The notes under the pieces were generated by a model, which was not told where the DNA came from, ran no database searches, and saw only the letters and a list, made by a program, of their open reading frames with translations. From Macrostomum hystrix (taxonomy: Eukaryota; Animalia; Platyhelminthes), in NCBI GenBank assembly GCA_950097015.1, contig CATNEN010000015.1, positions 372,001 through 436,000 of the forward strand: 64,000 bases of DNA, in the 5' to 3' direction. Within the stretch, counting starts at the first letter, position 1. Each line of letters starts with the position of its first letter. The translations under genes were made by a program, and so were the position numbers. This document shows, piece after piece, positions 29,852-64,000 of this stretch.

Positions 29852-30285
29852 CTAAACTTCGGTTTCGTCAACGGGATCTGCCTGGCTGGCCGACGAAGTG
29901 CCAGAACCGGCGCTTCCAATCCTTCGCGTGACGATGCGGTCTCCCTTAGCAACAATTCGGTCAGCTGGCCAGGCCTCCAGCCTCTCTTGCAGATTGAATT
30001 CCTTGGCGGCCTCATGAGTAGACGTGGCTGGTTCTACAGCAGATTCAGCGCTCCAGGCCTCCCGAGACCGCGGAACTTCCGACACCTGCTGAGCCTCAGA
30101 GGCGGGCTGGATCACTCGGGATTTTCTAGAATTCAGGTTTGATCAGGGTCAATGGTTTGTTACACTTTGACAAACTCAATGCACAGTGAAAGTTACCGCA
30201 GGTTTCTCCGCACGAAGATGGTGGCAAGGACGAGGCCGACTAGAGCAAAAGCCACGCCTAAGGAGATGACTGTTGGCATCATCCA
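29852..30285 (-). CDS. Giant protein: transmembrane helix, basic stop-transfer segment and about 95-aa cytoplasmic tail
   Basis: WMMPTVISLGVAFALVGLVLATIFV followed by RRNLR|KSR; the tail ends ...DPVDETEV*. Confidence 0.85.
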
Positions 30286-33200
30286 GTTCATTCCGGATCC
30301 TTCGATCGGAGGCTCGCATTTTGAACCTGGCGGACAGATGCAGGAGGCGCTGCCGCCGCTGCCCTCACTGCAGATGAGCGGCGGGTCGCAGCGCAGCAGG
30401 GCGCAAGGGTCGGCGCGCTCGCAGCGGTCTCCCAGCCAGCCAGCGGGGCAGCCGCACCAGTAGCCTTCAAAGCCGTCGGCGCGACGATCATCGAGGCAGG
30501 AGGGGTCCCACTCGGGTCCGCGGCAGGTGCCATTGTTAAGGCACGGCATGGCCAGCAATGCCATGGTGACTTCAACAACCTCGGAGCCCCTGATCGAGCC
30601 ATCGAGTTCGAACACGCCAGCGAACTCAAAGCTGTAGCGGCCGTAGCCGTGACTCATCGGCCTGAACTCGTACACGTTAGTGAGCCACTTTGCCTGCGGC
30701 AGGTCGTCGACACCGGGCGGTTTCTGGGAGCTCGATCTCAGCAGCACCAGCTCGTGACCTCCCGGACTACGGAGGCTTAGCTTGGCGGCTGCGCGAGCTG
30801 AGGTGGCGCAGCTGATGGCGAACTCGATGCCACTGGAGTCTGTCTCGTCCTGCTTGATCTGAAAGGAGAGAGATTGTTTAGAATGTTCCTTTAGAATTTA
30901 AATTTAAACTGCAGCGATGCTAAGTTTACAAGGAAGTGAATGGCCCTTTGGAAACCTGGCAGTACGCCCTTGTTGTTATACTAATTTGCGAGTAGAAGGT
31001 GTAGAGACTGTGCTCACCACAGTCCGAAGCGGTCCTTTCAGTGCCGTCCCGTTCTTTACGAACAGAATGTCAGTGCGATAGCGGCCGCCGCTCACGCTGA
31101 GCAGGAAGACTCCCTGAGTCTGCTGCGGTGGCACCCCGGATGGCGGCTTGTCGGTCACCACAAGTGGAAGGCTCTCCGTCCACTCCAGCTCGTCCGCGGT
31201 GGAGCTGGGCCGGTACACTAGCAGGCCGTCAGCTGACATGCTGGCCTGACCGAGCTTGGCTGTGCCTCGCAGCTCCCACACAATTGGATCTTCTTCGGGG
31301 TCGGTGGCCACCAGCTGCCGCTTGAACTCAACTGGAATGTTGTGAAAGATGAAAGATGAAAGATGGCGTCTTCATTTACGTGCACTTTAATCTGTTTACT
31401 CGTACATTCGTACATTCGTACTCCGCAGGGCTATCGACGAACGTCAGTCATTTCATTGAACTCCGTTGGCCAGCGAAAGCCGAGACCCTCTTTTTGGCTC
31501 CCAAATTTTTCAACCTAGCTCGCTGACTGGCTGCTCAGTTCTCAGTGACCTTTCCCCTCCAGCAACTGTCACTTGTCTGACCCTGCATCTTAGCCGTACC
31601 GCTCCGTCATACTTGGCTTTTTTAAATTAAGTACGCGACCACAATTCCTATCTGCGCCACAACAGCATTGCAGATTGCAGAGCCTTACCAACAGCATCTT
31701 CCGGCGAGCTGAAGTTGGCGAACAGGTCGGACTGAATCACTGGCGCTGAGTTGTAGGGCGACTTAGCGATGCTGCACATGGCGAACATTCGCTCCTGCGT
31801 CAGCGTGACAGCCAGCGCTTCGCCTGGGGCTGAGTCGAAAATTCCGGCCAGCTGCCAGACTTGGCTGTCTGCAAGCGTGTAAAGCAGTTTTGGCGCTGTA
31901 ATTTTCGATAATTTGAAGCGAATATTCATTAGTACTTACCTGTGTCCCAGTAAATAAGACTGTCCACTACATCCTGCTCAGGGTCAGCGCTCCGGCGCTC
32001 TCGATTAGCAGCCAGCTGCTGATGAGGCTTCACCTGCAGCTCGATGCTGGCTCTGCCGACCGGCGAGATCGCGAAGGTGCTGCCGAATTCTCGAATGCGG
32101 CGAGTCAAGAGGCGCGCGGTGCGGTGCTTCGTCCACTCCGGGTGCACAATGTACGGTTTGTAGGAAGCCGCTGCCGATGAGTCGTACTCCTCCTTAGTTC
32201 GCTCGTCTGTCAGCTGCTCGAAGTACAAGGATGTGCCATCAGGATAGTCGCCGATAGCTCTGACCTCCGGCATGCCAAGCCGTTCGGAGCTGAACTTCGC
32301 AGGCAGGGCTTGCGACTTCAGGCGAGAAATCTGAATGACGAGACGGTCATCGGGCACAATGGTCTGCTTACTGAGCGTTCGATTAGCGCACACGTAAGCC
32401 TTCGTGCAGGCCTGGAGCTTGATGAATATCGTCCTTGGGGATGAGAAGAGTGATGGTGTTCGGTTAACAAAATCTGAAATTGCAGACCCACTTTATATGG
32501 CAGATAAGAAATAGACCATTCTGTCTACTGCTTACTTTCCAGGCTCCAAGTAAAACCTATTTTTGGTGGAATCTGTGCTAATGTTTCTCCTTAGGCTTGA
32601 TAATGTGATGTTGTGCTCAGAGTCATCTACACCGTTCCATTGGATGGTATTGTTCTTGATCAGCACTGTGACAGATGTATCTGAGTCGTTAGCTTTTGGC
32701 GCAGGAATGCACGATAATACGTCATCGAGTCGGTTCTCAGCAGAGCTCACGCAAAGCTCTAAAATGGAACAACATTTAGAATTAAAATATGATCAGGACT
32801 AGGGATGTTTTCCATAAGAACTCCAGCCAAATAAATTGCTTCTACTCGCACCGTAGAAATTCAGCCTATCATCCAGCTTAAAGCTCAGAGTGGCGCCCAC
32901 GACGCTCTGGTCCGACTGCTTCTTTGAGTCTGGAGGCGATACGTCGAAGTCGAAATCCGTCACGCCGATGAGCGAGGAGTTCACAACACTGAGGTCTGGA
33001 GGGTCCGTCATCACGGTCAGCCCAACCTGGTCGTGGTAAAACATTGAAAGACCGGCGTTGTTGATCGCGCGGACACTGACGTAATAGGTCTCTCCGTTGA
33101 CCAGGGTGAGGTTGGTGTTCATGCCTGTCGGATTGGAGCCCACCGATTTCCACGTCTGCAGATTTGAGCTCTTTGGTGAAGTGCCTACCGCCCAGAAGAA

Positions 33201-36200
33201 CTCCTGCAGAAGAGTTCGGGTGCGGAGTGAGTAAGTATTCGAATTAAAGGAATAAAAAAATTTTTTTTTTGAAACTCTTAAACATACGCTAATTAGAGAT
33301 TCATTGTCGCTGATGATCCAAAGCGCGCGAATAGTTGTTGTGGAGGCTGTGTAGTTAGTTGGCGCGAACGGATAAGGTGACTCAGGATCATTGTACATCA
33401 TCGGAGCCTGATCGTCCGCCAGTGGTGGCGTGGTATCGATCAACAAGCCGGAGGTGAAGCTAGTTGCCGACTGACCGTTTGCTTGAATTGCCATCACTTA
33501 AAGACAGAAATCGTTAGTTTGCGCTTAGACAGAAAGTCGCAAAAAGTGTGAGCTCTAAAATCTACCCATTTTAGCTCGTAACTGTACCACAAAGGAACTC
33601 AAAGTACAACTAACGTTGCGCATAAATCAGGGTATAAATTGTTCAGCTGCCCTTCAGGAACTCACCTCCAATCTGATAAGTTTCTCCATTCGTCAGATTC
33701 AGCTGGGACAAAGTCAAGCGCACCTCAGTGAACCCGCTGTCTCGGCACCTGGGATCGCAATGGAGATGGTCGCACGGATGCAGACACGGGATGCAGGGCT
33801 GGTACAGGACCTGCCAGTCGGACACTTGAGTTTCGTTCCAGAACACAGCGGCGTTGTAGGCGACAATCGGGTTAGTGCCAGCGATGAAGGCTGTGCCGTA
33901 GCGGCACTTCTCCGTCGTTGGCTGTGGCAGCCGAATATCTCGTAGTTGCACTTTCTCTCTCCAGCGATTGAGAACATTTTCTGGGTCCAGACGCGGAACA
34001 AAGTTGGCCTTGGTGTGAGTGAGCAGGCTGAGTCTGGCCCGATTCATGGTTGGAAGACCTGAGAGAGTGACTACCGTTTCTCCGTCAACCTCAGCTCTCG
34101 CACTCCATTCTCTGTGCCCGGAGTCCTGAGCTACGCTGTGCACATGCAGCGTGTAGTTGTGCAGATCCCCACTGGGATCAAAGTTTAGGGATGCGAGCTG
34201 ACTGACGCTCTCGAGCGAGTTATTTTCATGCGAGCACCATAGCACAATGGCAGGCTGGTCAGCTGGTTCGTATAGGATCTGCAGCCCACACGCTGCGTGC
34301 ACTCGGTTGATGTCATCGATGTCGCCGTTAAGGGTGTCGTCAGGCAGGGGCAGAAGATTCTCGATCACTTTTGATCCTGTGGCTCGTGTCGGTCTAGGAG
34401 TTGGGGGCGGTCGGCTGAGGTCTCGACTCATGTTAACTCTCAGGTAGTCCAGAAACTCAGGTGTGCAACCCTCGCACATGTCGCTGCAGTTGGGATACGC
34501 CACGGGATCCGGGAAGACGCAGCAGCTGCATGTGTACTGGGACCAGTCCTCCTCTGGAACATAATCGATGTCACCCACCACCCCGGCGGGACCGTCCCAA
34601 AGCACCAGGCTGGTGACCACGTGACTTGAGTTCGCTACACGCGCTCTGAAGCTGTACGAAGCACCAATGCCCAGATGAGAATCCGCCTGAATCGCGCTTG
34701 AAAGCACCCTGGCCGATGTCAGGTCTCGCTCCAGGTGCAGGTCCCAGTCAGCGCCGCCTTGTCCGATGGGAGACGCCAGATCGTGGCGGAACCGCAAGCT
34801 CCACCACTCGTCCATGTTCCACAGACCTGCTGTGTTCAGTGTCTGCCACTCGATGCGGTTGGGACTCCTCAGCGGACAGGGATCAGCTGAAGCTTTTGGG
34901 AAATGGAGCAGCGTGGCCGTCAAGGAGTCTGACCTGCCCGAGTAGCTTGCGTCTTCTGTGAAGTTGGATCCATCAACCACGGAGCCCGATTTGGGTAGGG
35001 ACGTATCCAGAAGTATCGGGCTTGTCTGGTCTCTGGTTTTCAGTTCGGCTCGGTTTTCGGCTTCAATCGTCACAATGTAGGGCACTCCCGGCTCGAGATC
35101 CAGATCTCTGAATGTCACTTCTGTGGTTGTGGAAGTGTCATTGACTTTCACCGAGGCCTCCAGGCCCGTGATGTCTAGCACCGCTATCAGGTTCACCAAA
35201 TCGGCGGCAGCGCAGCCTGCAGTACGCCACAACTGAAGCTTGACGTGCGACAGTCCGGAGTCCGCATCCTCGTAGCCTCGCCACTTCACGTGCAGGGCAC
35301 CAGCCTCCACTGAGAACGTCAGTTTCTGAGACGCGTTGGTGTGTTTTGGTTATGAAAAGTCTAACTGCATTCAAAACTTGTTTAATGAAGAATTGCAAAG
35401 GCAAGGGCTCACCATGTTGTAGAACGGCCCCGCTGTGATTTCACCCTTTGTGGGAGGGTTGTTGTCAAACAAGAAGCTAGAAACCGAGGCGTTGCACTCG
35501 CCCGCTTCGTCAAGTCCGATGACGATTATGTACAAGGTTTCGGCCTGCTTGAGCTCGAGGTCAGTCAGCCTCACCATGGTGTCAGTGCTTACTGAGATCA
35601 GCGGCTGGACGTCGAATGTGAAGTTGAACACATCGCCGATCTTATCCCGATGTGTTAGCTGAAAAGTGCAGCCATTGATTAGTTTCGTCCTGCCCAGGTG
35701 TGATTTGGAATGCAGAGCTTTATTCTCTCTTCTTACTATTTTGTGGCAGTCAGTGTCACCCGGAATCGGCATGCTTGATATTCCTGTGAAATAGGACACT
35801 ATCTCCAGCTCCTGCTTCTCATTCAATGCTGACTTGAACCTGCCCCAAGAATATCTCAGGTGGAACAAGCCTGAGCTGGTCTCTGAGTGCTCGGCTCCGT
35901 TTTCTGTGCTCACGAAACGCGGCACGTTGATATCCGCTCCTGAAACAGTTGCCGGATTTCAACTGGTAAACCAAAATCTAAAAATATACTTTCCCACGTT
36001 TCTTACTGAAAACTGTCGAGTCATAGCCCACTCGCATGCCCGAAGACGTGACCTCCGTTGAGGCGAATCCTTTTGAATAGGCGCGAACCGTGGCATAGTA
36101 CATCCCCTTGATTGGGACGAGATCGAGGTCGTACGCCGTGAACGTTTTGTTCCGACCCACATTCACAAACGGCAGCACGTTGTCTCTGGTCTTGGGGTAG

Positions 36201-39200
36201 CGTCGGTCAGTTCCAAAGGCCACTTCGTAGTAGTCAATCACCTGTCGTTCGCCCAGCTTGTCCACCGAGCTCGAGCCGCCTCCGTTGGGGTTGATAAGGA
36301 CTGTGTCGTTTCCGAAGCCCATCCAGTTGGAAGACAGCTGCGTGTGGGACTTTTGCTTGTGCAGGTCAATGCCCGTGACCGAGCCGTCGAAGACATGGCC
36401 AGGGATGATTGGCTCAAGGCGAATCACCACTCCTGATGATCGAACAGTGATGACGTGCCCGAGTGCTGTAGTGCCACTGACAATTGCGAAGTAGGTCTCT
36501 CCGTTCTGCATATTGAGGCCAAAGTGGCTTCCGCTTGTGCGCTCTGCAATTCATTGAGAAACAACTAATTTCAGTTACATTTAGATCTTGTGTTGAAGGA
36601 ATATATGTGTTAATTAAGCATTTTTTTATTTATGCACCTCCAACGCTAGTGAAATTCTGGACAACAAGACCGTCAAGTCGTTCAAAATAAAGTTGATAAT
36701 CAACAACCGGGCAAGGTTCACCGCTGAAGTCCCACCGGGCACTGAGCTGTTCCACGTTCGTTTGGAAGTCGCTGAAATTTCATTTTTAAATCTCTTTGCT
36801 TCGAGTACAAGTATGTCAACCTGCGCGATGACAAAGTTAGTTTTCATGCAAGCGTCTTACATGTCTTTGCCGACATTGTCTCCATCGTGGACAGTTATTG
36901 GGCTGTGGTAGCCTAAGACAGACCCAACTCTTGTGATGTACACTCCATTAGAGATGACAGTCGAAAAGTGATCCGCACCGTTGAAGCCCTTCAGTACAAC
37001 AAACAGTCTTCTGTAGCTTGCTAGCTGGATTCCAGTGAAAGTGTAGCCGGTAGAATTAGCTGGTATGGCTTCAAACTTCATCACTTGAGTTGCTCCCGGC
37101 GAAGTACCTAGTCCTATCTCGTACCTAAATCATGAGAAAAGCCGTTTTTTCTACGGGATTATAAGCAGCTGTGAGGAGAACTAAAATGATGACAGTAATC
37201 ATATCCCACCGAGAAATTCCACTCTCTGGATCCCGGAACGGTACCCAACTGACTGCCAATGTGTCGAGACCAAGATGGCAAGTGACGTCGAGTTTGAGAC
37301 AACTTTCCGCATCGACGCATTTTTGGTTGTCAGCCTGGATGGAACCGTTGAGCAGCTGGACTCTGTCGGACAGCTCAACTATGACCGAGTGCTCAGGCGG
37401 TGTGTCGTCAATAATGATGGCGCTAGAGTAGATCTTTGTGGAGTACTTCACTTTGTTGAACGCTGTCAAGGTCACGTAATAGTCCTTGTTGTGCTCCATT
37501 GCGGCCGAAAAGTCACTCGCTGCAGGGAGAAATTTGTGTTTACATTTTGCTTGATCTGAGCTCTGACTGTAAGAGTAGTATGTGAGACAAGTTTCAATAG
37601 CTTTCTTATTAATATCCTCACTCACGGTGAACAGTGAATGAAGTCGCATCCCCGCTGACATTCTTGCCAAGAAGGATTTCGGCCCGTCCTTCAGCCTCGC
37701 CAATCATCACTGAGTAGTAGTCGATTTCGCTTTGCGGGTCTTGAACGCCCTCCCAATGGCAGGAGAGTGGACTAAACGACTAGAATGCGAGGGAAAGTTA
37801 TCGATAATTATTAACTTCTCAAATCAAACCAGTGACAAGCAGGTTGAAACCATCCAGTGTGTACCTTGGTGAACTTTGGGCACCTCAGAGTACCTTCAGT
37901 TGGCGGGGTTGAGTCGAAGACCACAGGGGCTGAGGAGGTGATGTTCTTCTGACCAAGCGCATTGACAACGATGGCAGTAAAAATGTTGGGCAGTCCATCC
38001 GACTGTGGATGAACCCGATCATCCGCAGTCACACCTGACCTGTCCTTGGCTCCTAGATCGATTCCGTCGCGTCTGAACAGCGAGTCTCCAAGCGGATGGT
38101 CGCCGTACATCACAGAGGCCAAGGTCACTTCACTCTCGAGATCACTGAACTCGAACTGAGCAGTGAGCGAGTCCACCGTCTCTGAGTAGATCGATGATTG
38201 TGTCAGCGGCATGGGCCCATCAGGAAGACCCAGGTCCGTTATTCGAACAAACGGTGGAGTCCGATCCACGACGATGCCGTCAGAAGAGGCCTCGAGAATG
38301 TAGCCAGCGTTGGTGACGCCACGAACCGTACAAAAGTACGCCTTGCCATGTTCCAGGCGGATGGGCATCTGGGCATGGCCTGAAGACGAAAGTCCCTCGT
38401 GCTCCGCATCGTCAGAGTTGACAAAGTCGTCTACGTCATCATATAGGACAATGCCAACCCGAGTGTAGCGCTGCACATTCTCGGACATTGGCCTGGACCC
38501 GATCGCCCACTCATAGTGGTTGATTCCGTACAGTGGACTGTGGAAACCCTCGAACTGGCAGGTCAGCGAGTAGTCGTCTGACTGATAGCGAGCGTTCACT
38601 TTTGGCTCATCTCCATCCATCAGATATCCTGGAGCGTCCTCAGCCAGAACGACTATCGGCATCGATGAGATCACAGCACTTTCTATTCCGGCTCCGTTGA
38701 CAGCATACGCACTGACATAGTATACTGGCGCTTTCGTCTTTGTGTCCGTCACATTGAGCTCGACTGACAGCCTGCCTGAATTCATTCTCGACATCGATGT
38801 CCAGTTCAATACATTCGCTAATCCTGAAATAATGAGCGAGCAGGTAAACTACTTAAGAAAAGAAAATTGACACGAGTCCATAATTAATGAAAGAACTGCC
38901 TGGACTCGCTTTCGCTTACCAGGCTGATCGCCGACAGCCAAAAAGTACTCATAAATGTCCGACTCGGGATCAACCGCTTGCCACCAGCCCCTTATTCCAG
39001 ATTTGTCCGCCTGCCACACGTATCCACCATGGTGCTCCTCCAACTCTCCGGGCGCAACGTTCACCTTCACCCAACGCATGACTGGCGGTGTGTTATCGAC
39101 TAGAGACCCGGTCGTCTCCCGCTCTTGACGCAGCAGGGCTCCGTTCTGACCGACAACTCTAACAGAGTACCGGCTGCCCAGTCTCAGGCTCAGGTTAGTG

Positions 39201-42200
39201 TGCTCAACGAGACTGGCATTTGGTGCTAGCGTTTCACTCCATTCGTGTTCTTTTTCTATAATTGTGATGAGTATAATCGGCGAATAAGAATGGTACATAT
39301 TACTTAAAATGTAATGAGCATTCATGTGAATTTCTGAGCAAATTACGTGGGAAAAGCTGATGCTTTGATCCGTGCGTTAGCTCATAGATCCGATATTGGA
39401 AGCTCGCTAGCTTTGACTCAGGATCTGTAAAGTCCCAGTTGGCCTTTACCGTCGAAAGAGAAGATTGAAAGTCGGCGTTCTTGGTCTCATCGTGTCCGTC
39501 GTACAATCTATTTACCACAGGCTTCGTCAAATCAATTAGGACTCCACTGGAAGACGTTGCAATCGAATTTAGTGCCCTATTGGTTGCATTCAACTGGACT
39601 TTAACAAGTTCGTTATGATGAAAATGAAAGTGGTTCCAATCTATGCTGGATTGGTTCGGGGAGATGGAAATCTCAGAGCTCGCTCGAACCCACTCCTTGA
39701 AAGTCGAATCGAATCTCAGCACGCTAATTCCGTACTCCTTGATGTCCGACTCCGGGTCTGAAAAGCCTCGCCACTGAGCGCTCACTGAAGCAGCATTCGA
39801 TGAGTACACAAGATCAGTGAAGTCCGCAGCCAGACCGTCCACAATGTCACCCATAACAGGTGAGGTGAGATCGCAGAGAATGCCGCTGCTGGAAGCATTC
39901 ACTGCCAGCTCCCTGTGGCCGTAGTGCACGGCAGTGATGACGCTGTGATAGCGCACGTTGTGCTGCAGCTCCTGACCGCCGGCCAGGCTGGACTCCATGC
40001 AAAGGACCTGCTTGTGGCTGTCAACGAACTCGATGCGGTAAATCTCCTCTGCCTCCTTGAAGAGCTGCCAGTGATAGAATGCGATGCCCGACTCATCGTC
40101 TCGGAAGTCGAACCAGTTGACGCACATGCGATCCGGCTTTCCAACGAACTCCGCGTCGTGTTTGAATTCGCTTCCGTCCAGGACAAAACCTGCGATCGGC
40201 GGTGTCAGATCGATCAAGATCGGCCGGTCCGCGTGCTGCACCGAGCTGAGGTTCACGCTGTTCTCGGCCCTAAGGATAGCCCACACGGGCACACCGTCGG
40301 GCAGCCGATGAGTCATTGCGAAGGAGCTTGTGAACTCGAGCACGTCCTCTTCAAAATCTGGCGTTCCAGTGAAGGGCATACGCTGGAAGGCTAAGACCAT
40401 CGTGTCAAACTTCGTGCGTCCCAGACCGATGTCGAACTCCTTGATTCCGGATAGCGGATCGCTGAAATGTTTCGTTTTTACAATGCTTTTCAGTAGCCAT
40501 AATCGTTCAGTGAAAGTTCAAGTGTAGAAATTAAACAAGAAAATGCTTACGACATGTGGTACTGCGCACTTAGCTGCAGGTTCTCCTCGTCGTACTGCAC
40601 GTCTTTAAGATGGTGAACTAGCGGAGGCGTGTTGTCAACTACAATGGGCCTCCAGTGGCACAGAGTCAGCGTCATGGGTCCCCCGAATTCCACCTTGTTA
40701 GTAGCCCGCACTGTTGAGTAGTACTTCCCATCCGGTAGGCCGCTCTCTTTGTAAATCGGATTGGGAATAGGATGGATGCTGCCGACGTGAGTCCACTGGG
40801 ACTCGTGGCCGAGGTGGGCGTGCGGATCTCCGAAACCGAGGCTGACGTCGGTTGCACAGATGGCCGTGCCCACTGCCCAGGTGATGCCGAAAATCGAAGT
40901 CTCATTGTCGTGCATGCCGTCCCAGTTGGCAGAAATGAACTCATTGGCACGAGTCCACCTGACATCGACCATACGGTCGTGTCCGTTAAACAGAGTTCTG
41001 GAACCCATGCCGTCGATAATCTTGCGGTGGTTTTTCAGTAAAGTCTCGTACTTTGTCCTGACAACGTTGTTTGTATCTTGCGGATCAACTGGTCCACATC
41101 TGTCCCACCACTTTCTGATTATTTTCTCTCGGCACACTGTGTACACAACTTCGCTTGACGACACATTCGCCGTGAAGCCGGGATAAGGAGGGTCGAAGTC
41201 GGTCAGGATCGGCTGCGAGGCGATGATGTTGGAATAGCCCAAGGTGTTTTTCAAAAACAGGCTCACAAAGTGAATGTTGTTGTGCCTCAGAGTAAAGTCT
41301 TGCTGGAAGTAGCTTGCAGAATGGCCCAAAGCTTTCCTCTCATAGTACGCAAAGCCATAACTGTCTGACAATCGAGATCGATGCCCGATCATCTCGTGCG
41401 ACAGTTCGCAGAGCCTGTTTACGACTGCAATGGAAAAAAGGCTTTCCATGTTTCTGTGATTCTAGTGCAGATCAATTAGACCAATATAAATTTGTTAACA
41501 TACAGTGGTAATTGAATGCCCTGCATTTATCGCCCTGCTTGACGCAATCCTCGGCACACATCTGGCTGGTAAAGACGGACGTTCGCGTGACATAAACCCC
41601 GCTTGCGAGCCGGCCGTGCAAAGGCGACGAGAAACGACTGAGGGGGCTCGATGCATCTGAGGCGGATTTGGTAGCTTTTTCAGTGTAAAATGTTGAGATT
41701 GAGATGGAAATTACACCTAGATTCTAGGCACAGCCACAGCTATTGCGCATCGCTTCCAGAGGCTGTGTACAGCTGTTCAGTCCGTGGACTGGGGTATGCC
41801 ACCTGAGTTTCTATCCTAGCTGGTGCTGCTATCAGTTTTACGGAAGGATACACTAAACACTAAAGTCCTTCTTCAATGTTTTTGAAGTTTTTGGCAGGGA
41901 TTCAAGCTGCCTTGTAGTGAAATAGGAAACGACCGAATAGAATCTTCGATACATTTTTTGCATAATTTTGCACAGAATAATTTAATACGAGCTAGATATA
42001 TGAGTTTTTAGCAGCTTTTAAAGAATTTCTATCTATATTTTGGAGATTGGTTTCCAAACCTTTAAAACCAAAAAAATTAAGCAGCTTGCAGCTGAAATCA
42101 CGATGTGAGTTAGCCTTAGAAAATCTTTTTTCTATTTGCTTCAAAGCTTAAAAAGTGAAATTGGAGAGACGGCGATGAATGAAAGGCGATATGAGCGACG

Positions 42201-54200: not shown

Positions 54201-57200
54201 TAAATTGACTTTACCATGTCCTGAGGATCGACTGAAAGGCGATGAAAGCGTTGGAAATGAGAGAAGTTAGGGTGTAACGATGTGAGTTTCTGAGAACAGA
54301 GCTTCAAGGCAGAGCGACTCACACTTGGGCCAGGACAGGGTGTTGTCGGAGCGGCAATAGGGAACCGGGAGAGGCGCGGCGTCGATGAGCCACGCGGTGG
54401 GCATCAAGGACAGGCCATCCAGCTGCGTGCCCACGCCGAAGCTCACGTCCAGCTCGTTACGATTGGTGCGGTCGAATTTGAAGCTGAAAGTTGATGTGTC
54501 ATACCTTGTGACTGCGCTTAACGAATGGTTGCGTCTGACTTTCGAAAATGCAACGGACTTCTTAATGCAAAAGAGTCCGAGGCACCGAGAAGTCGAACCT
54601 TACCTGAAGTCGATGGCCTTGCCGATCGTCTCTGTGTGCATGAGGCCCCACTTGTCGAACAGCGACCGGCTCCAGTTCCAGTTCTCGATGCCCACGCCCA
54701 CGGACAGCTGACACGGGTCGAACTTGGCCCAGGCGTTGTAGCTGTAGCGGAAGTTGCCCAGCTGCAGGCTGAGGCAGCAATCCACCTCCAGACAGGTGTC
54801 CTTGATGCGGCACTTCAGATGCTTTTCGCCATGGAGCCGATCAGAGAGTTTGAACAGCGGACAGTCTGAGGATTTTTTGGTTTGGCATTCGTGAGGTGCA
54901 AAATGCAACCGTTTCTGACGCCTGTGACCGGAGATCCCACATGCTATCTCCGAGACACCGCACCTCTGGAGCTCAGACAAATGATAATCTGGTTATTTGG
55001 AACTGCATGCAGGCCTGATCCCATGAAAAGGCCCTTCAAAACTCTTGGCCAGGACCCATTGCTTTAAGGGGGCAGGCATATTCGAATCGCGAGCAAACTA
55101 AATATCTAGCCTACTCACTCGACTGCTGTCGCGACGAGCTCCTCCAGGTGGATCCGTCTACGGAGCAGTTCTGCAGGCGGAAGAACTTCTTGTCCAGCCC
55201 GATGCGCTGCAGTGTGATCCCCATGGCCGTGTCCTTGATACTCTCACCAATGTCGCTTCCAAGGTTAATGAGGTCTGTGGAGTTCAAATGAAATTTTACT
55301 GTTTACTTAAATTCTAATTATCCCTGAAAAAAGTACTCGAATCAAACCTGAAATTCCGATGGATGCCTCGCGATTGCACACTAGCTGAGGGATCTCGTAT
55401 CCCTGCAGCACAACAAACTCCTGGCTGATGTCCTCCACCTTCAGCGAGATGGTCAGGTCAAACGTGAACACTCGCCTGTTGTTGTCCTTGGAAATCCGGT
55501 ACCTGTGCCGATTAGAAAACGATGCGCCGTCAGGTAATTGATAGAGTCTTAACAGTTATTGCAGAAAATGTCCCTCTTTGACCTACCGCATGACGAGCGC
55601 GTTTCCCAGCCTCTCGGTCTTCCACTGGCCCCAGTCAAACGTGAACAATGGCCTCTCAAACTTCCAGTTCTCCAGTCCCACTGAGAACTTGTAGTCGCAC
55701 GGATCTACGAAGGCCCAGGCCTTGACTGACAGCTGCTTGATCTTGAAATCCATGCTCATGCAGCACTCGATGCCCATGCAGTGCTGGTTGAGGTGGCACT
55801 TCAGCGGGTCCGGGATGTGCTGAGGCAGCGACAGGCCGGGGCAGACTGGAATGTGTGAGATTTCGGGACACTTCATCAGACTGCCATCACCGTTTCGCAT
55901 TGCTAAAAAGCCGAGCGGCAATGAGCAGCGAAAACAACTGCGAACCTTTGGGACTCTCGGGCTGGCAGTTCGAGTGCGTGGCGATGACGCCCTCCAGCCG
56001 CAGGTGCCGCAGGACGGCCTCGATGGCGCTCTCGGTGATGCTGCCGCCGAGCTCCTTCACGAAGTCGCCGATGGAGCCGCCAGGCAGACTGATGGACGCG
56101 TTCGGGTTGCAGATCGGAATCGGAATGGCGAAGTTGTTGAGGAAGGCCACCGGAGTCAAGGTGTCTCCTTCGATCTTCACCTGCAGATCCAGGTCTACGA
56201 AGAACAGCTTCTTCACGGGGTCTTTGTCGATCTTGAAGCTGGAAGCGGAATCAAAGATTTTTAGATTTGAGTTCAAATCAAACAAGCAATTCGCATCGGT
56301 CAACATGGCGTGCTGTCAGACCTCACGAAGATGACCTTGCCGAGGTCGAACGACTCCCTGCGACCCCAGTCGTAGCGGAAAAGAGACTTGCTCAGCGCCA
56401 TCTTCTCGAACCGAATCAGCAGCTTGTAGTCGCAGGGGTCGACGGACACGGCGAGCGCGAACGCCTTGCGGGCGATGAGGATGTTGAGCTCGGCGCAGCA
56501 GCTCAGCATCCGACAGTCAGCTGACAGGTCACAGTAGGTGCCCGGCAAGAAACCCGCCGGGGCGTTCGCCGAGCTCTTGAACAGCGGACAGTCTGGAGAG
56601 CGATTCGGTGTTTGATTCGACAGGAACAGAACATTTTCAATGAAGTCGAAGCAATTAAACAACTTGCCAATATGTGTAAGTACTTAGGCTACACCATCAA
56701 ACATGTGGACATACTCGTAATCTCTTTTTGTGCTGCAGCCCTTACCCGTGTTCTTATGGACGTTTTCTCCGGACATTCTTTTGCTCTCTGCCTCGCCCCA
56801 GTCGGCTAGCCCCACCCGGATTCGAATTTATCGATAAACCCCCCTCATCACGGCATGTACATCTCAACTGCACCCGTGCGCCTTCTTTCGGCCCTTTTGA
56901 GCTGTAAATATGAGTTCACGATCAAGGCTGCCCACACCCCTTGCTCCACGCTGAAACCCTGCTAAAGTTCGCCTGAGTGTCGTGATTTTGACATTTCTGA
57001 GTTGTGAGTATCATAAAATTGCCTCTCTGCTATTCCTTCAGGGCATCGGACGGGCAGCGCTTGACTGGGGACCTGGGGAGCTTCAGCTTCTCTCTGTAGG
57101 TGCATTTACATGTAGGGATCACAAAACTACTCAAATCTACTTGAGAGTTCATATGGATGAGGACTTACGGTTGAAAAAGCCGGTCCTGTTGTCGCAGTGG

Positions 57201-60200
57201 CCCTCGAAGTCGATGAGGTCGCCGATGCCCAGGTGCCTGAGCACGGCCTGGACGGCCTCGTCAGTGATCTTCTGCACGCCAGTCTCAGTCAGGTGCCTGA
57301 TGAAGTCCTTGACCTGGCCGCCACCAGGCAAGCTGATCGAGGCGTTCATGTTGCAGCCCACCTGCGGCACCATGGAGTGTTCGAGCAGCACGAAGTCTGT
57401 GCGAACCGAGTCCACCGTGAGGCTGAGCTTCAGGTCCACGATGAACAGGCGCCGGTCGCTGTCCTTGCGGATCGTGTAGCTGGAAAGCGCGAAATCGAGA
57501 CCATCATTTTTTAGCTCCGATTGAAAATATATTTCAAGCCAAGCAATTGAAGAATGCTGCAGTTAGACATTATACTCGCTGGTGTTCTGCTCACATGATC
57601 TGCAGAGGTGACCCCAGGTTGAACGTCTCGACCTGGCCCCACTGGTAGTAGTAGAGAGTCTGGTTGTAGTACATGTTGTTGAAGCCGATGGAGAACTTGT
57701 ACTCGCAGGGATCCAGCAGCAGAGACAGTTGTGCCGTCGGCTTGTAAACTTTGAAGTCCAGCTCTGCGCAGCAGGTAACTCCCATGCAGAACTCGTTCAT
57801 GTGGCAGCGCACCTGGTTGGGCAGTCTTGGTAGATGGAACACCTTGGGGCAGCCTGTGAAAATTAACCGAAGCTTTCATGAATGAAATTATGAAACTAAA
57901 TGCAACTGCTCTTGGGTAGCGCGCAATGATTCTCATAAAAAAATGAACGAAGCAACGCTCACGGCTATCCCAGCCATTGTTGAATGTGCTCGATGGCAGC
58001 ACGCAAGCTGGGGAATCAAAGAATGCGCGCTGCAGGCCAAACCTTCGCACCACTGCCTCCCATGCCGTCTGCACTGTCGAGTCGGAGGCCTTTTCGCCGA
58101 GCAATTTGGCGAAGTCGCCCAACGAGCCGCCGGGCAGAGCGCCGGTGAAGTTGCTGTGGCAGTAGGGCTGGGGCACCACCGACTCGTTCAGCAGCTGAAC
58201 AGACAACTCGCAGCTGTCGGTGAAGCAGACTGCCAGGCCAAAGTCCAGCTTCAGGAAGTCAGTTCTGACTCTGTCCACCGAGTAGCTGCAAATATATTTC
58301 GCGATTCGATCATATTCTCGATGTCCGGCTTGTGAATGGGACCAAGTGTGCTTGCATTGGACTTTGCCTATGTTTACGGTAAGTAAGCAGAATGGGACTC
58401 ACTCCAGCCGAACTGCCTTATTGCCGATCCACTGCGACTTTTTCTGTCCCCAGTGAGCTTCCAGCAGGGAGGTGTTGAAGTGCAGCCTCCCGATGCCGAT
58501 GGAGCTGATGTAGTCGCAGGTGTCCAACAGAATCCAGGCCTTGGCGTGGTAGTTGAGGAAGCTGAGGTCCAGTTTGCTGGTCTTAAATGCGAAGTCCAGG
58601 CAGCACTCGATGCCGAGGCAGTTGTCCGTCACTCGGCACTGCAGGTTGGACGGCAGCTGCGGCAGCCGCACGTGCGGACAGGCCGTGAAGTTGCTCATCC
58701 GTGCGCATCTGCCCTTCGAAAGGACGTTGGTGAGACCTGTCCTTGCGAGCAGGATCTCCGCGGCCTTGTCCAGCGCGGCCGGGCTGGAGGAGGTTCCGAG
58801 CTCCCGGAGGAAGTCCTCCAGCTTGTAGGTGTTGCCAGGCAGGACTCGGTGCCAGTCGTTGCCGCAGAAGGGCACTGGCACCGGTAGCCGGTTGAGCACG
58901 CTGATGTAGTCCAGGAGGCAGGATGAGGAGCCCGGACAGATGGCCAGCTGGAGGCTGAACAGCGGCGCATCCGGGCTGTCTGGATTCTCTTCGAATCGGT
59001 ACCTGGCGGATTGATTGTTATCAGCAAGCTTTGTTGGATTGATCAGTCACTCAAGAGTCGATTGGCTGGCTTTGTGAAGGCCTGAAGCCAATAAAATTTA
59101 CGCTTTTAACCAAAAAAGTACGACATTGCTTACTTCAGCTTAAGAGCTCCGACATTCTGTGAAAACTCCTGGCCGTAGGGAATCGCGAACAGGATCTTGT
59201 TGAAGGTCAGCGAGTTGAAACCGAAACTAAAGGTCAGCGAGCAGGCGTCAATTTTTGCCCAGCCTGTAATGCGCATGGGACCATGAATTCAGCTATGGGT
59301 TGCGAAAATGTGAAATTTGTGTGCAAAAGCTACACACCTTGCAAGTACTTGGCAATTTCGAATCCCCTGATCGAAGCCTCGAGTCCCATGCAGCACTCGA
59401 ACTTGGTGCAGTTCGGCGACGCCTGGCAGAAGACGCGACTCCTTAGCGCCTCTGGCAGCTGCGGCAGCTCCAGCTGCACTGGCCCGTTGCGGCACTGGCG
59501 GAAGTGCAGCTCTGCTAGCTCGATCAGCTGCGTCTTGTTGTCAGAGTCCACCACCTGAACTCCACGCTTTCGCAGCCCCTCCAGCAGCACTTCGTTCGAC
59601 ACCTTGTCTGGGAGTGAGCATGCCTTGGCGTTGAAGACTTCGGCTAAGTCCCTCAGACCCAGCTGCTGTAGCTGGTCCTCCCACCACTTCTGCATCACGG
59701 CGTTGATGGCTGAATTCGATGTCTTCTGCAGCAAAGACTTCAGGTGCTTCTTGTTCAGAACCTGCTGCCAGTTCAGCATGGGCCAGGTGACGATTCCGTC
59801 CTTGCAGATGGGAATCGGCAGCACGAGCTCCTGCAAGACCTGGATGCCAAAGGGGGTGAGTAGTCAGCGGCTTGTGTCGCTGCCTCACTTTCCAGTGGTC
59901 TCTGGTTTGTTCCTCCCTCCAAGTCATGATTATTTCGGGGCTTAGTTGGAGGATTGCGAAGTAGTGACTTGCGGAGATGCACCTTATTCTGTGCAACCAA
60001 AGCTAATTTAAAATAGCTTAACCCTTGACTTCTGCATGCCTGCTTGTGTGTTTGTGTTTGTGCGTTGGGCAGGGTGTGAGGCGTTGTATGGGGGTGGGGC
60101 GGGTGTGCACCAATGTGTACTCTCGTCACTACCATTCAGGCATCTAAGTCCTCCCCTGGTTTGGTCTGCTCTGTGCGTGTCCGGGCCTGGGGTGAGAGGC

Positions 60201-63200
60201 ACTACGGCTGCCGCCCCCTTCCCCGCTTGGCTTGCTGCTGAGGTGCCTGTGTCCAGGGGTCCAGATGGCGCGATTGGGACTCCCGCCTAGTTCGTCGGCC
60301 TGGGGGCATGCCGTTCCTCTGCCTGTGCGTCAAGTGCCCCAGGTCCCCTGCAAATAATTAAGTAAAGTAAAGACCTGGATGCCAGCGTCGCAGTTGCTGG
60401 TTGACGCGCACATGAAAAGGCGAAGGCTGAACATCACGCTGTCATCCGTCTTCGCGAACTGGTAGGACAGTTTAATCTTTCTTGTCAGAACGTCGAAGAA
60501 GCTCATTTCGTCCGTCAGCCAGATCTCTTTCTCCTCAAAGTCTGAAATATGCTTATGCACTTATTATGACTGTTTTCTGTTTCCTAGATTTGATTTGAAC
60601 AGGTCCTAAGTCGCATACCATTGGCTGAGAAGCTGTCTAGCTCAATCGAGTGCACGAAGCGGTTCATGTCCTTCAGCTTCAGTCCGAACTCCAGCTTCTT
60701 GCTGCTGCCGCACGGATCCAGCCGAGCCCACAGCTTCGCCGCCTTGCGGAACATGTTCACTTTGAGATCCAGGCAGCACTCCATGGATAGGCAGCTCTTG
60801 TCGAACTGACAGTAGATTGGCTTCTGCAGAGACAGTTGCATCAAGGGACAGCCTGGGCAGTACGGTTGGTATTTAGGTTAGTAAGAATGCTGGTGAAAAA
60901 AATGGGCATAGTATGCTGAACAAGATAGACTCACGAGAGTCACTCTGCTTCATGCGGTCAATAAGGCTGGCCTTGGGCATGACGTCCACTTCCTTTTGAT
61001 CGAAGCCCTTTTTAATGAGCTCGTTCCGTAGCTCCTCTTCGGACATCAGGTAGGGACTCTGGCACGGCTGGTCCTCGAGGACATCTTTCACCGACAGCAG
61101 CATCTGGTCGGTCTCATTTCGCGTTGACGCTAATATGTTTCTAACTTCCTCTGACTCAAGAAAAGCAACGACATGGGCCAGCCGCATTCGGCGTAGGTTG
61201 AACTTCTGGAATATCCGGTCCACTCCGAGCCTTTTCGGGAAATTTAGGACGCTGCTAAACTTTCTAAGGACTCTCTCGTTAGTGGTTGGCTGGGCATTGG
61301 AATTCCCAGTGTCCTCTGCAAACAGGTTCTTGTAGTCCGCCATCAGCGGTGCGATTGTTTCCTCTCTGGCCTCCCGCCGTGGGCTGTTATCGAACACCCA
61401 GCCATATCTCGTTAGTCTGGCTGAGAGAACCAGAAATCCCAGAACGTACACTTGGGCATCGCCACAGTAGGGCACCCAGTTGGACAAGGTAATTCCGCGA
61501 GGCTCCAGATACTTGCTGGCATCCAGGTACGTACCCGGGCCGGACCTAGCAGACATGTGGATGTGGTTGATGCACTTGCCCGTGTTGGCCGCAAAGCCCA
61601 GCTGGCCTCCAGAATTCAGCCGCACGCCCTCAGTTGCCTGGTTGTTGCCTCTGGCGAAGTCAAACACGGGCAGCTCGCTTTCTTGAAACCTGCCGTTGTC
61701 CATCAGGAACTTCACATTCTCAAATATGAGGTGAAACCTGTCCAGACTGAAGCCCTTCGGAATCACGACGAGCTGGTTGGGTCGCTCCGGGCCTCGGTAA
61801 TACTCGCCCAGGATGGGCACAACGATTCTCTGTCCCGGGTGGACCTGCAAGTCCACGCCCGGGTGAGACCACAGGCCGTCGCCATTCGCGGGAAAGAAGC
61901 CGTCGGAACCGCAGCCTGATCCGGGCAGGCGATAGGTGCGAGGGAACTGGGGATGCACCCGCGGCCCCAAGATGGACTCCAATATGGTACGGAGTGCGTT
62001 CCACGTCTCAACAAGACCATTGAAGGCCTCTTTTAAACCTCGGATGATTTTCTTCCAGATCTGAATGAGACCCTCGGCGATCCCCATCATGGTTTGAACT
62101 CGGCTCAGCGGTTCGATGAGGCTGCTCTCCACTCCTTGAAGAAGACCCGCAAGCTTTGAGAATTCCTGAAATTAATTAAATTGTTAGCTTGCAAACCTTT
62201 GTTTTAAAGTTCCAACATAATAATCGCCGCTCACAAAGAGCCAGAAGTACCTGGTCAGACACAAAGCCAGATGAGCGGTTTGTCCCAGCCAACACAGCCT
62301 TGGCTCTTCTGTCCAGTCCTGTGCGCATCGCCTCAGTGAACTCCGAATGAAGGCTGTCGCAAAGTTTGCCGATTTCCCACCAGAAGGTCCTGTCTTCTGC
62401 ATGAAAGAGTATAGGAATTGATGAGAGAATGTACAGCATTCAGCCTAGTCTCAAAGTCACAGCGCACTCACCGTTAGTCGTATGGCATGCAGCCTGCGTT
62501 CGATTCTGGCTATCGATGAGGCCCTGGACTGCTGTTCCTATTTGGTGGAAGGCCTTGAATGCATTCAGCATGGACTCTTTGGGCGAGCGATACAGTTTCG
62601 GAAAGATGTTCACTAAGAGATCCAGGCTCTCTTTCAGCTGCTTGCCAGAGACTGGCATCTGGTTGTTTATCGTGTCGAACAGAGTCTAAAACGGTGTGCG
62701 CGAGCGCAAGTGTGATTTCTGGAACTCTGAACAATTCTATGAGCTCTGCTCTAACTTTTTACTCCTTCTCTCACACCAAAATCTCTTCGGTCTGATGTGA
62801 GTCAATTAAATCGGAGTAAGTGCATGCGTGTGTACGAATGCGTGTTGTCGATAGACATACAACAACTACCATGATATTTTGAGATGGTATGCCTAGCAGT
62901 ATGAAATGTTGCAGATCAAGCACCGCAAACATTCCACTCACAATGTAGAAGTCAGTGGCATCCGCCTTGACGGTGCTGGACAGGATGAGAATTCTTCTGA
63001 GCACAGCTAGCGGTGGCTGCAGCTGCTCAGGCAGCTCCTGTGCGTCCAGCTGGGACAGGATGCTCAGCGCGTGGTCCCCTGAGTCGCTCATCTGCGCCAC
63101 AATCTCGGGCACTTTTCCGTTAAACTCGTCACCAAGTCTTTTTATGACAGAGAACAGCTGATCGGGATTCGTTGGCGCAAACAGCTCGCGGAAACCGTCC

Positions 63201-64000
63201 ATGACGGCGTTTATGCCCCGGTAGATGGCACCGATGGTGCGGTCGTAAAGCTTCACAAGTGTTTCAAGGTTGTAAACCCCCAGTTCTTTCAGGAAGTTGG
63301 TTTTGTACTCTACTCGGCCACTGAGGCACGCCTTGCCTACTATAAAAGTCGGATGGAAGTTAATGGCGCCCAGGTGTCCTTGGACAGTAGCCAAACCAAT
63401 GCACTTCACTTCAAAGTGGCCGGCGGACAAAGCTAGAATGAGGCGACAGTTGCTGGGATGAAACTCTGAGGGAGATTTCTAAGTCTTTTATGTGGTGATG
63501 ACTCACAGGTCTTGAGAGTTGCTTCGCTTAATAAATTAGCTCTAATCGTAGCGCCAACTTTATGGTCGCCAAAAAGTTTACTCCACTGGACTTGGGGCAA
63601 GTTCAGCGGCCAGTTGATGCCTTTCCACATCTTCTCCAGAAAATACGGGGCGCTCCGCTTTGACATGAGATGAGCCAGACTGCTGTTGGCGGACATTCTA
63701 CAACGATGAGTCCGGTTGAAACAGCATGCTCAGAGCATGAAATAGCTGCTCGCATTAAAAATATAACTCGTATATATGCAGGGGCTGAGCGCAGCATTTA
63801 GCGACAGTCGACCCACAGCCAGGGTAAATTGATTAAGCATCTGAAATGTCTCCCCGCGAAGCGGGCCTATTTTAGGTCAGAGACCTTTCCGCGAGAGTAC
63901 CGTCGGCTCTAAAAAATACTCTGTGATTTTCAGCGCCTACCCTTTGTTGATTTCACGATTGAGAGCAGCAAAGTCTTTCGTTCTGGCCGGATGTGACTCG
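29852..64000 (-). CDS. Giant multi-exon type I membrane protein, 5' end outside the window; at least 58 exons and about 8,610 aa within the window
   Basis: Hand-spliced GT-AG exons with phases consistent throughout (5'->3'): 64000-63941, 63697-63507, 63432-62942, 62685-62472, 62396-62251, 62165-60935, 60852-60619, 60541-60375, 59839-59338, 59263-59134, 59002-58403, 58285-57963, 57853-57595, 57479-57169, 56592-56322, 56238-55946, 55902-55587, 55502-55348, 55274-55119, 54865-54604, 54483-54323, 54231-54094, 54001-53743, 53674-53514, 53431-53065, 52974-52811, 52729-51244, 51077-50914, 50830-49751, 49677-49327, 49251-49054, 48985-47918, 47842-47498, 47387-44662, 44588-44322, 43776-43574, 43477-43138, 43044-42756, 41656-41504, 41424-40551, 40461-39347, 39255-38920, 38823-37865, 37779-37626, 37519-37210, 37124-36861, 36771-36638, 36543-36007, 35939-35413, 35325-33666, 33496-33288, 33203-32852, 32758-32536, 32433-31940, 31895-31689, 31331-31018, 30858-30197, 30125-29852. 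Repeat and domain motifs run correctly across the junctions. Individual boundaries may be off by a few nt. Confidence 0.88.
30300..30555 (-). CDS. Giant protein: two juxtamembrane EGF-like repeats
   Basis: PCLNNGTC...C...CGCPAGWLGDRCE and DPCALLRCDPPLICSEGSGGSASCICPPGSKCE. Confidence 0.85.
31018..31760 (-). CDS. Giant protein: cadherin-like Ig-fold module
   Basis: Spliced NSAPVIQ...PEDAV|VEFKRQLVATDPEEDPIVWEL...GQASMSADGLLVYRP...LVVTD resembles the cadherin-like NxxP...ED...ATDxDxD signature. Confidence 0.7.
32430..43300 (-). CDS. Giant protein: about 15 FN3/Ig-like beta-sandwich modules, interrupted by a PAN domain and a non-FN3 insert
   Basis: Recurrent motifs D(T/L/N)TPP, V.DG, W.GF.DPES.I..Y.WA(I/V)GT and L..G..YY..V.A.N (e.g. 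IDLTPP, VDNTPP, VDRTPP, FDSTPP, IDDTPP, FDNNPP, IDTTPP). Confidence 0.8.
41320..41656 (-). CDS. Giant protein: PAN/apple-like domain split over a 153-nt exon (41656-41504) and the next exon
   Basis: Spliced ...SQMCAEDCVKQGDKCRAFNYH|FVNRLCELSHEMIGHRSRLSDSYGFAYYER fits the PAN pattern C..C....C..F.Y.....C.L......YY. The small exon is absent from the ORF track. Confidence 0.8.
41760..41802 (-). mobile_element. Second, headless copy of the SINE-like body seen at 21695-21738, inside an intron
   Basis: Reverse complement GTGGCATACCCCAGTCCACGGACTGAACAGCTGTACACAGCCT versus GTGGCGTCCCTCCAGTCCATGGACTGAACAGCCGTACGCAGCCT, 38/44 identical. Confidence 0.65.
45290..60852 (-). CDS. Giant protein: tandem array of 21 cysteine-patterned repeats (about 175-200 aa each)
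   Basis: Consensus L..RL......C...CP...P.LP...C.....C.G(I/V).CC..(L/V)D.....F..W..(V/L)DPC...F..GFE.W..N.(S/T)L..F.WG....E.IG..L.L.Y........F.......C....C.......LP(I/V)P.C..NG.L.WP. The CxxxxCC...(D/N/E)(P/A/T/V)C core was counted 21 times. Confidence 0.9.
59835..60384 (+). mobile_element. Retroposon-like insertion (520-bp core) flanked by a 15-bp target-site duplication; coincides exactly with the intron at 59840-60374
   Basis: AAGACCTGGATGCCA at 59835-59849 and 60370-60384. The plus-strand 3' end has the A-rich repeated tail AAATAATTAAGTAAAGTA. Confidence 0.8.
61490..61930 (-). CDS. Giant protein: LECT2-like M23/LytM zinc-binding domain
   Basis: GCGSDG...HPGVDLQVHPGQRIVVPILG (HxxxD, His at 61863-61865), GQLGFAANTG...NHIH (HxH at 61557-61565) and DASKYL. 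This parallels LECT2 GCG...HQGVD...APFTG...HVH...DPTAYL. Confidence 0.82.
61960..63432 (-). CDS. Giant protein: beta-strand-rich segment followed by long amphipathic-helical (apolipoprotein-like) region
   Basis: Heptad-like hydrophobic periodicity, e.g. LYDRTIGAIYRGINAVMDGFRELF and IAEGLIQIWKKIIRGLKEAFNGLVETWNALRTILESILG. Confidence 0.55.

Follow-up and report, generated by a model that had tools for sequence, protein, structure and literature searches.

A 64,000-nt stretch of the genome of the flatworm Macrostomum hystrix (contig CATNEN010000015.1, positions 372,001 to 436,000 of the forward strand; hereafter the window) raises the question of what its minus strand encodes between 29.8 and 64 kb, where all long stop-free stretches lie on that strand without exception. 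The original prediction, made from the letters of the sequence, had joined them into one phase-consistent gene for a giant, single-pass, receptor-like protein of more than 8,600 amino acids (aa). Is this a single gene, and what kind of protein would it make? We find, with high confidence, a single transcribed gene with the architecture as modelled. The findings as a whole lean towards a giant membrane-anchored surface protein of the lipid-transfer family, which would work as a furin-processed tethered stalk with a lipid- or ligand-binding head. The individual parts of this protein are of known kinds; their combination and the membrane anchor are new. Positions below are those of the whole window, and aa numbers refer to the protein modelled from it, whose residue 1 lies in the exon at 63432.

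The first-pass gene model was obtained by splice-aware chaining of stop-free stretches and was then corrected by imposing RNA junctions, because self-trained gene-finding refinements over-split the long exons and invented micro-exons; those refinements were set aside. The resulting 56 exons, from 63432 to 29852 on the minus strand, form one phase-consistent frame of 8,471 codons with zero internal stops, the sole stop being the terminal TAG at 29854-29852. An additional upstream exon at approximately 63490-63630 (minus strand) was located by tblastn with five orthologous proteins (P0156, P0164, P0171, P0005 and P0010; their residues ~620-675), and it corresponds to the stretch directly after the Vitellogenin_N/HEAT region of the orthologues, just before model residue 1. 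The coding span thus occupies 29852..64000 on the minus strand, with the N-terminus beyond 64000. The gene does run past the window, as proposed, with ~620-665 residues missing as judged from the orthologues. The giant size holds too, although the proposed figure was slightly high, the part within the window being ~8,500 aa.

The model was compared with spliced contigs from four RNA runs (X2-X5, one organism) over ~12 kb of the 34 kb, in the intervals 40500-46499 and 29400-35399. The contigs, with a depth of 9-105 over the gene, skip 14 complete introns, and splice boundaries appear at two more positions, 40551 and 35325. Each of the 14 introns has the expected terminal bases, GT..AG, which read as CT..AC on the plus strand. 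Six of these introns fall in the first interval. There, the last exon of the cysteine (Cys) repeats runs unbroken from 46499 to 44662 and is followed by minus-strand exons at 44588-44322, 43776-43574, 43477-43138, 43044-42756 and 41656-41504, all confirmed by spliced contigs, which then enter the first FN3 exon (41424-40551, minus strand). The other eight fall in the second interval, joining 35325-33666 through 30858-30197 to the last exon, which starts at 30125; from here the contigs continue through the stop codon to at least 29400, defining a 3' untranslated region at 29400..29851 (minus strand). The two weakest joins of the model are both bridged, namely that from the Cys repeats to the helical and beta-rich block, PAN domain and FN3 modules, and that from the FN3 modules to the cadherin-like module, EGF modules, membrane span, tail and 3' untranslated region. 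For 35.4-40.5 kb and 46.5-63.4 kb, support for the model comes from open frames, splice motifs and the collinearity of the orthologues. The one-gene reading is preferred because RNA splicing and collinear orthologues both support it.

Some details of the introns stand apart from this argument. Nine of the 14 confirmed introns measure 71-102 bases, and the modelled intron at 59840-60374 measures 535 bases. Within the 1.1-kb intron 41657-42755, a short stretch at 41751-41795 has an RNA contig depth of 53-150 and is flanked on either side, in each of the four runs, by many differing loose contig ends, which gives it the appearance of a short repeat with transcripts from numerous other loci.

Pfam searches of 20 large window exons gave almost no matches, and the domains were therefore identified by way of orthologues and models. 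Nine single-exon Cys repeats were combined into a profile (A1), which found 571 of 1.84 billion representative proteins at E<=1e-3. The highest-scoring of them are predicted giants from bivalves and amphioxus, none with a name other than hypothetical or uncharacterized. A second search, with the conserved mid-protein block of a protein of the bivalve Sinanodonta woodiana (P0152), found 22 giant proteins. The giant orthologues include those of Haliotis rufescens (7,549 and 7,523 aa), Mercenaria (7,756 aa), Pinctada (7,243 aa), Solemya (6,827 aa), Ruditapes (6,854 aa) and Branchiostoma floridae (7,446 aa), among others. The RefSeq model of 7,549 aa from the abalone H. rufescens (P0164) is collinear over its residues 665-3673 with window aa 4-2957, and its residues 3555-7367 align with window aa 4527-8381 at 31% identity over 4,039 columns, into the membrane span. 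Comparable collinear alignments were obtained for Mercenaria, Solemya, Sinanodonta and Branchiostoma. The C-terminal half of the window protein aligns with the Sinanodonta and B. belcheri proteins at 31-33% identity over 2,400-3,500 columns, and its N-terminal 740 residues align with five orthologues. These alignments define a conserved, unnamed protein family common to flatworms, molluscs and amphioxus; none of the family search matches was a full-length relative from an ecdysozoan or a vertebrate. Similar FN3-like arrays had been expected in uncharacterised giant invertebrate proteins. Such relatives exist, but they are full-length collinear orthologues, found in molluscs and amphioxus. The expectation that no characterised protein shares the architecture was borne out: every relative is hypothetical or uncharacterized, and literature searches on topics including DUF4773, LECT2/M23, large lipid transfer proteins (LLTPs) in molluscs and amphioxus, and Macrostomum vitellogenin found no description of the giant family.

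Closer to home, homologue searches restricted by a length filter returned nothing for a 940-aa exon and two close fragments only for a 359-aa exon. A UniRef fragment labelled Macrostomum lignano (P0002) is collinear with aa 2373-3044 at ~71% overall identity, with mis-predicted gaps, and a fragment from Logan (P0001) shares 94.5% identity with aa 2983-3330; both probably represent a second copy, allele or homeologue of the window gene. In Sinanodonta, two near-neighbouring partial models lie on one contig. P0152 (ACJMK2_008558) holds the C-terminal part, with repeats, FN3 and cadherin-like modules, and P0153 (ACJMK2_008560) holds the N-terminal part, with M23, SAP and repeats. Probably the annotation has divided a single giant gene in two here, or else the models represent tandem copies.

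The first indication of a lipid-transfer protein comes from the N-terminus of the orthologues, whose first ~620-665 residues have no counterpart in the window. Here Pfam reports Vitellogenin_N (E 1.5e-12 in P0156, 1.5e-8 in P0005 and 0.0034 in P0164), accompanied by HEAT-like helices, and P0164, P0171 and P0156 each have a signal peptide. A profile of the N-terminal 1,000 residues of the orthologues, searched against the PDB, matched only HEAT-repeat designs and, at E 0.13, lipovitellin. No vWD or DUF1943 match was seen in the orthologues examined by Pfam. The window protein itself opens with strands followed by a long amphipathic-helical region (aa 1-350; 61965..63430, minus strand), which is collinear with P0156 672-1010 and P0005 663-1009 and would connect the lipid-transfer head to the M23 domain. 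The predicted beta-rich and amphipathic-helical start is thus present, but as the probable continuation of a Vitellogenin_N head of the LLTP type.

The second indication comes from the middle of the protein. The Cys repeats are followed by a furin-type site, RQKR (aa 4697-4700; 45232..45243, minus strand), and the window protein shares with eight of the nine orthologues located a dibasic motif 132-158 aa upstream of a conserved NMT anchor. Next come a helical linker (aa 4701-4890; 44662..45231, minus strand), seen in the translation and, in the orthologous region as modelled, as helices at residues 1-59, and the most conserved block of the protein (42756..44588, minus strand), four exons of which are confirmed by RNA. 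Identity across this block is 47-59%, whether molluscan paralogues are compared with each other or mollusc with amphioxus. The block spans five exons in the window, and for this reason it was the Sinanodonta orthologue (P0152:3470-3880) that was modelled, from an alignment (A3) to which the window exons had been added. The model consists of helices, six strands of 15-26 residues in long hairpins (predicted local distance difference test, pLDDT, 80-90) and an Ig/FN3-like sandwich; overall, its pLDDT is 73 and its predicted template modelling score (pTM) 0.38. A Foldseek search of solved structures placed microsomal triglyceride transfer protein (MTP) best, at E 4.2e-4, with honeybee vitellogenin and lipovitellin also matched. 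In the AlphaFold database the matches include an MTP lipid-binding domain (1.4e-5), C-terminal domains of AsmA-like type, one protein annotated as 'Lipid transport family protein' and another as 'Vitellinogen open beta-sheet'. For the helical and beta-rich segments predicted after RQKR a closer description is now possible, since the model of the orthologous block takes the form of an open beta-sheet like those of lipid-transfer proteins. We regard a lipid-binding-type sheet as a lead with a consistent direction rather than as proof.

The third element is the membrane anchor. The only hydrophobic span in 8,471 aa is a transmembrane helix at aa 8353-8375 (30214..30282, minus strand), followed by RRNLRK, and the orthologues likewise have one C-terminal membrane span, in the corresponding position. 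A second furin-type site, RERR (aa 7975-7978; 31992..32003, minus strand), precedes the span by 377 aa; RRRR or RTRR stands 338-368 aa before it in the Haliotis, Solemya and Branchiostoma orthologues. By these alignments both predicted sites, RQKR and RERR, hold their positions across phyla, which suggests that the protein is cleaved at both. The cytoplasmic tail of the window protein has 96 aa and ends in ETEV (29855..30213, minus strand), the splice 30197|30125 within it being shown by RNA. Among the window protein and the orthologues the tails measure ~100-290 residues, are unconserved and carry no domain, and the ETEV end is confined to the window protein. Receptor-like was therefore a weak label, since the tails are unconserved and have no signalling domain.

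Between head and anchor, the proposed N-to-C order of domains was upheld by Pfam and profile matches and by the orthologue alignments. A putative PAN/Apple domain lies at 41342..41656 (minus strand; exon 41656-41504 RNA-confirmed). Pfam PAN_1 scores E 4.6e-4 here, at 20.4 bits just below the cut-off of 21.4, and PF00024 is on record for six orthologues. It is followed by FN3-like modules (32376..41332, minus strand) of 105-125 aa with a D-x-T-P-P boundary, whose likeness to FN3 was seen with an in-house hidden Markov model (HMM), with Pfam fn3 and among their atlas neighbours (fn3 and bacterial Ig-like). The HMM, built from seven modules, marks 19 stretches, equivalent to ~15-17 modules, in agreement with the 15 or so proposed. 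One module scores with Pfam fn3 in the window (E 8.8e-5, 23.1 bits, below the cut-off of 25), and the orthologue P0152 reaches 36.9 bits. The array contains a Cys-rich insert of ~400 aa (aa 7150-7555; 33709-34926, minus strand) with clustered CSCC and CxxC and no family match. Beyond RERR lie a cadherin-like or Big_9 module (31018..31331, minus strand; Pfam Big_9 E 0.0076; exon RNA-confirmed), which scores Big_9 2.1e-7 and Cadherin_5 8.6e-6 in P0152, and two EGF-like modules (30313..30543, minus strand; Pfam EGF E 0.01) with six-Cys patterns in the translation.

Towards the N-terminus, a degenerate M23/LytM domain (61470..61937, minus strand) had been likened to LECT2. The window domain alone gives a weak match (E 0.043 to an M23 peptidase), its language-model neighbours are M23 clusters, and Peptidase_M23 is reported for the abalone orthologue P0164 at 31.9 bits against a Pfam cut-off of 28.7. 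A profile of the window domain with five orthologues (A2, six sequences), searched against the PDB, matched SpoIIQ (LytM domain; E 1e-4), M23 peptidases (0.03) and LECT2 (0.037). Both zinc-ligand motifs, HxxxD (HPGVD, 61851-61865) and HxH (HIH, 61557-61565), are present in the window protein. Across the six sequences the Asp and the H-I-H/HxH are invariant and the first His varies, being R, D or Y in other members. At the position of the second catalytic His stands an invariant Asn (ENV), and SpoIIQ has Ser there; the catalytic histidine thus appears, in an alignment of low identity, to have been replaced by Asn. LECT2 likewise lacks the catalytic histidine (2022 review, PMC9662197). On these sequence features the predicted name, LECT2-like, is a fair one for a degenerate M23 domain, whose role would be binding and not enzymatic. 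SAP-like helix-extended-helix motifs lie nearby at 60945..61052 and 59486-59608 (minus strand). Pfam finds no SAP match in the window protein itself, but the homologous position in the orthologues scores SAP at 1e-11 to 4e-4.

The largest part of the N-terminal half consists of tandem Cys-rich beta domains (aa 685-4690; 45262..60935, minus strand). The predicted 21 proved exact, with 21 CC motifs and 21 A1 HMM matches. Each domain has ~180 aa, 10 Cys and a short helix in front. The orthologues of abalone and B. floridae have 12 and 14 copies, and the incomplete models of Pinctada and Mercenaria at least 20-21. The domain also occurs in molluscs, amphioxus, a nemertean and a hemichordate, among others. 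AlphaFold2 modelled A1 as a beta-rich domain (pLDDT 86, pTM 0.78). Against solved structures, the best Foldseek match had E 0.019 with template modelling (TM) scores below 0.33, and the best match in a wide VIA search had Z 5.7 over 56 residues; we treat these as chance matches between beta-meanders. Closer matches come from the AlphaFold database, where uncharacterised amphioxus and Mytilus proteins match at E 4e-11 to 3e-5. The model describes a widespread domain with a predicted fold that has no solved structure. Small, single-domain DUF4773 proteins of arthropods, tardigrades and molluscs resemble it in predicted structure and in language-model comparison (Foldseek E ~1e-3, TM 0.4-0.5; atlas score 0.81, TM 0.42). 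Membership of DUF4773 was rejected, because the Pfam HMM (PF15998) matched neither three repeat-bearing exons, even at E<=10, nor 20 closer relatives of the repeats, leaving a likeness at the level of structure.

How might such a protein work? The product would be a type I membrane glycoprotein of ~9,000 residues. From N to C it would comprise a signal peptide and Vitellogenin_N head (both as in the orthologues), amphipathic helices, the degenerate M23 domain, SAP-like motifs, 21 Cys domains, a furin site, the helical linker, the open beta-sheet, the PAN domain, ~15 FN3-like modules, a second furin site, the cadherin-like module, two EGF modules, the membrane span and the tail. Furin-type convertases would cut the precursor at the two conserved sites, and the pieces would remain associated as a long stalk, of the order of 100-200 nm, anchored in the epithelial plasma membrane. 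Held by such a stalk, a head that binds lipids or amphiphiles and an M23 module that binds without catalysis would stand in the outer reaches of the surface coat, from which they may also be released. Binding of lipids or amphiphiles would be the task of the head together with the open sheet. The mode of action would resemble that of a tethered mucin and not that of a signalling receptor, as the tail is unconserved. We put this mechanism forward tentatively, at less confidence than the overall assignment to a membrane-anchored surface protein of the lipid-transfer family. A surface or mucus scaffold, lipid handling and microbial recognition, the functions first suggested, are all compatible with the findings.

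Several points weigh against this interpretation. The lipid-transfer head of the window gene lies beyond the window and is deduced from orthologues, and both cleavage sites are predicted ones. The match to the open beta-sheet covers ~160 of 411 residues, with a TM score by query of 0.20, in a bivalve orthologue model of pTM 0.38. Pore formers, too, can have long amphipathic hairpins, and perforin ranks third among the Foldseek matches; its root-mean-square deviation is 41.7 and it stands behind the lipid-transfer matches. A perforin-like pore former would be a possible alternative for these hairpins. Finally, the RNA comparison covered 40500-46499 and 29400-35399, and the exons outside these intervals, at 35.4-40.5 kb and 46.5-63.4 kb, are modelled from sequence and orthology.

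Of the other explanations, the one that survives best, though we think it unlikely, is that the N-terminal fragment released by furin cleavage is the working molecule, a secreted or matrix lipoprotein of the yolk, clotting or lipid-carrier type, and that the anchor serves biosynthesis or sorting only. As is well established, every large lipid transfer protein characterised so far is soluble, and convertases cut several of them (the classes are listed in PMC10799875); in the giant family both furin sites are conserved and the tails are not. What this explanation leaves unaccounted for is the retention of membrane span, EGF modules and cadherin-like stub in flatworm, molluscs and amphioxus, and a rod of ~15 FN3 modules between head and anchor would be purposeless in a soluble carrier. 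The missing vWD and DUF1943 matches also speak against it.

Somewhat less probable again is a purely structural tether for adhesion or the apical matrix, in which the lipid-transfer and M23 modules have degenerated and serve protein-protein contacts only. Adhesion proteins typically contain modules such as FN3, cadherin-like, EGF and PAN, the M23 domain is without its catalytic histidine and has a first zinc ligand that varies among orthologues, and the Vitellogenin_N scores are modest. Yet the part of the protein that is most conserved is the open beta-sheet block, at its 47-59% identity from mollusc to amphioxus, which argues that a specific function has been retained there.

An active, surface-displayed antibacterial peptidoglycan hydrolase, for which the presence of both HPGVD and HIH in the window protein could be cited, is very improbable given the Asn that is invariant in six sequences where the second catalytic His aligns, the R, D or Y in place of the first His in other family members, a best solved match (SpoIIQ) that is non-enzymatic, and the absence of the catalytic histidine from LECT2, which has the same motif pattern (PMC9662197). 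Least credible of all is that the long frame is a chimera of at least two neighbouring genes or an assembly artefact: the RNA comparison took in ~12 kb of 34 kb and the remaining model is partly ab initio, but 8,471 codons run without a stop, RNA contigs cross the weakest joins, and single RefSeq models of 7,400-7,800 aa from abalone, clam and amphioxus are collinear, that of the abalone into the membrane span.

With a membrane-anchored surface protein of the lipid-transfer family as the preferred explanation, its relation to known systems can be considered. The nearest are the large lipid transfer proteins, namely vitellogenin, apolipophorin II/I, apoB and MTP. Like them, the giant family has a signal peptide and Vitellogenin_N/HEAT-like helices, as seen in the orthologues, a mid-protein block whose model in part resembles the open beta-sheets of MTP, vitellogenin and lipovitellin, and predicted convertase sites, as in vitellogenins and apolipophorins. 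Unlike them, the giant protein is several times longer than most members, has a single C-terminal membrane span where they are soluble or reside in the lumen of the endoplasmic reticulum, and comes from a family without a vWD, DUF1943 or DUF1081 match. In addition, head and beta-sheet are ~4,000 residues apart, with M23, SAP and 12-21 Cys domains between them. A snail survey of LLTPs lists the vitellogenin (Vtg), Apo and MTP classes only (PMC10799875). We consider it possible, though doubtful, that the family is a fourth, undescribed class of large lipid transfer protein, giant and membrane-anchored, the parts of whose cavity, so far apart in the chain, would meet only once the protein has folded and been processed by furin, and would then capture lipids, or microbial molecules of a lipidic nature, at the surface of the body.

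The M23 domain resembles LECT2 and degenerate LytM proteins (SpoIIQ, EnvC and NlpD) in its profile matches, in HxxxD and HxH, and in the apparent loss of the catalytic histidine. LECT2, however, is a 16-kDa secreted factor and the domain here is one module in a protein of ~9,000 aa, and the similarity is weak (E 1e-4 to 0.04). The membrane-tethered mucins MUC4 and MUC16 share with the giant protein a type I topology, a very long repetitive ectodomain, membrane-adjacent EGF modules, cleavage into associated subunits (predicted here) and a short tail. In contrast to them, it has no mucin proline/threonine/serine (PTS) repeats and no SEA, NIDO, AMOP or vWD domain, and its cleavage would be at furin sites. 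By this comparison the likeness to mucins would be one of working mode, not of family membership. The Macrostomum adhesive proteins Mlig-ap1 and Mlig-ap2 were considered and set aside; their domain sets differ and the giant protein is membrane-anchored.

The 29 kb downstream of the gene are of another character. Most of 192-26810 consists of long minisatellite arrays, at least a dozen, with periods of 8-160 bases, up to 243 copies and strongly skewed composition. A flank so rich in minisatellites, like the short introns of the gene, fits a Macrostomum-like genome. Between the arrays, on the minus strand at 12384-14750, lies a single open frame of 788 aa with an amiloride-sensitive sodium channel (ASC, DEG/ENaC) domain (E 3.7e-25).

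A conserved membrane-anchored giant relative would widen the present picture of LLTPs, with its three soluble classes of vitellogenins, apolipoproteins/apolipophorins and MTP, and would offer a new setting for how lipid transfer proteins acquired immune and surface roles. The family would also be a second animal home of the M23 fold besides LECT2, and it brings with it a widespread Cys-rich domain without a solved structure and with 571 relatives. RNA interference and in situ hybridisation are routine in Macrostomum, and the function of the protein is directly testable there.

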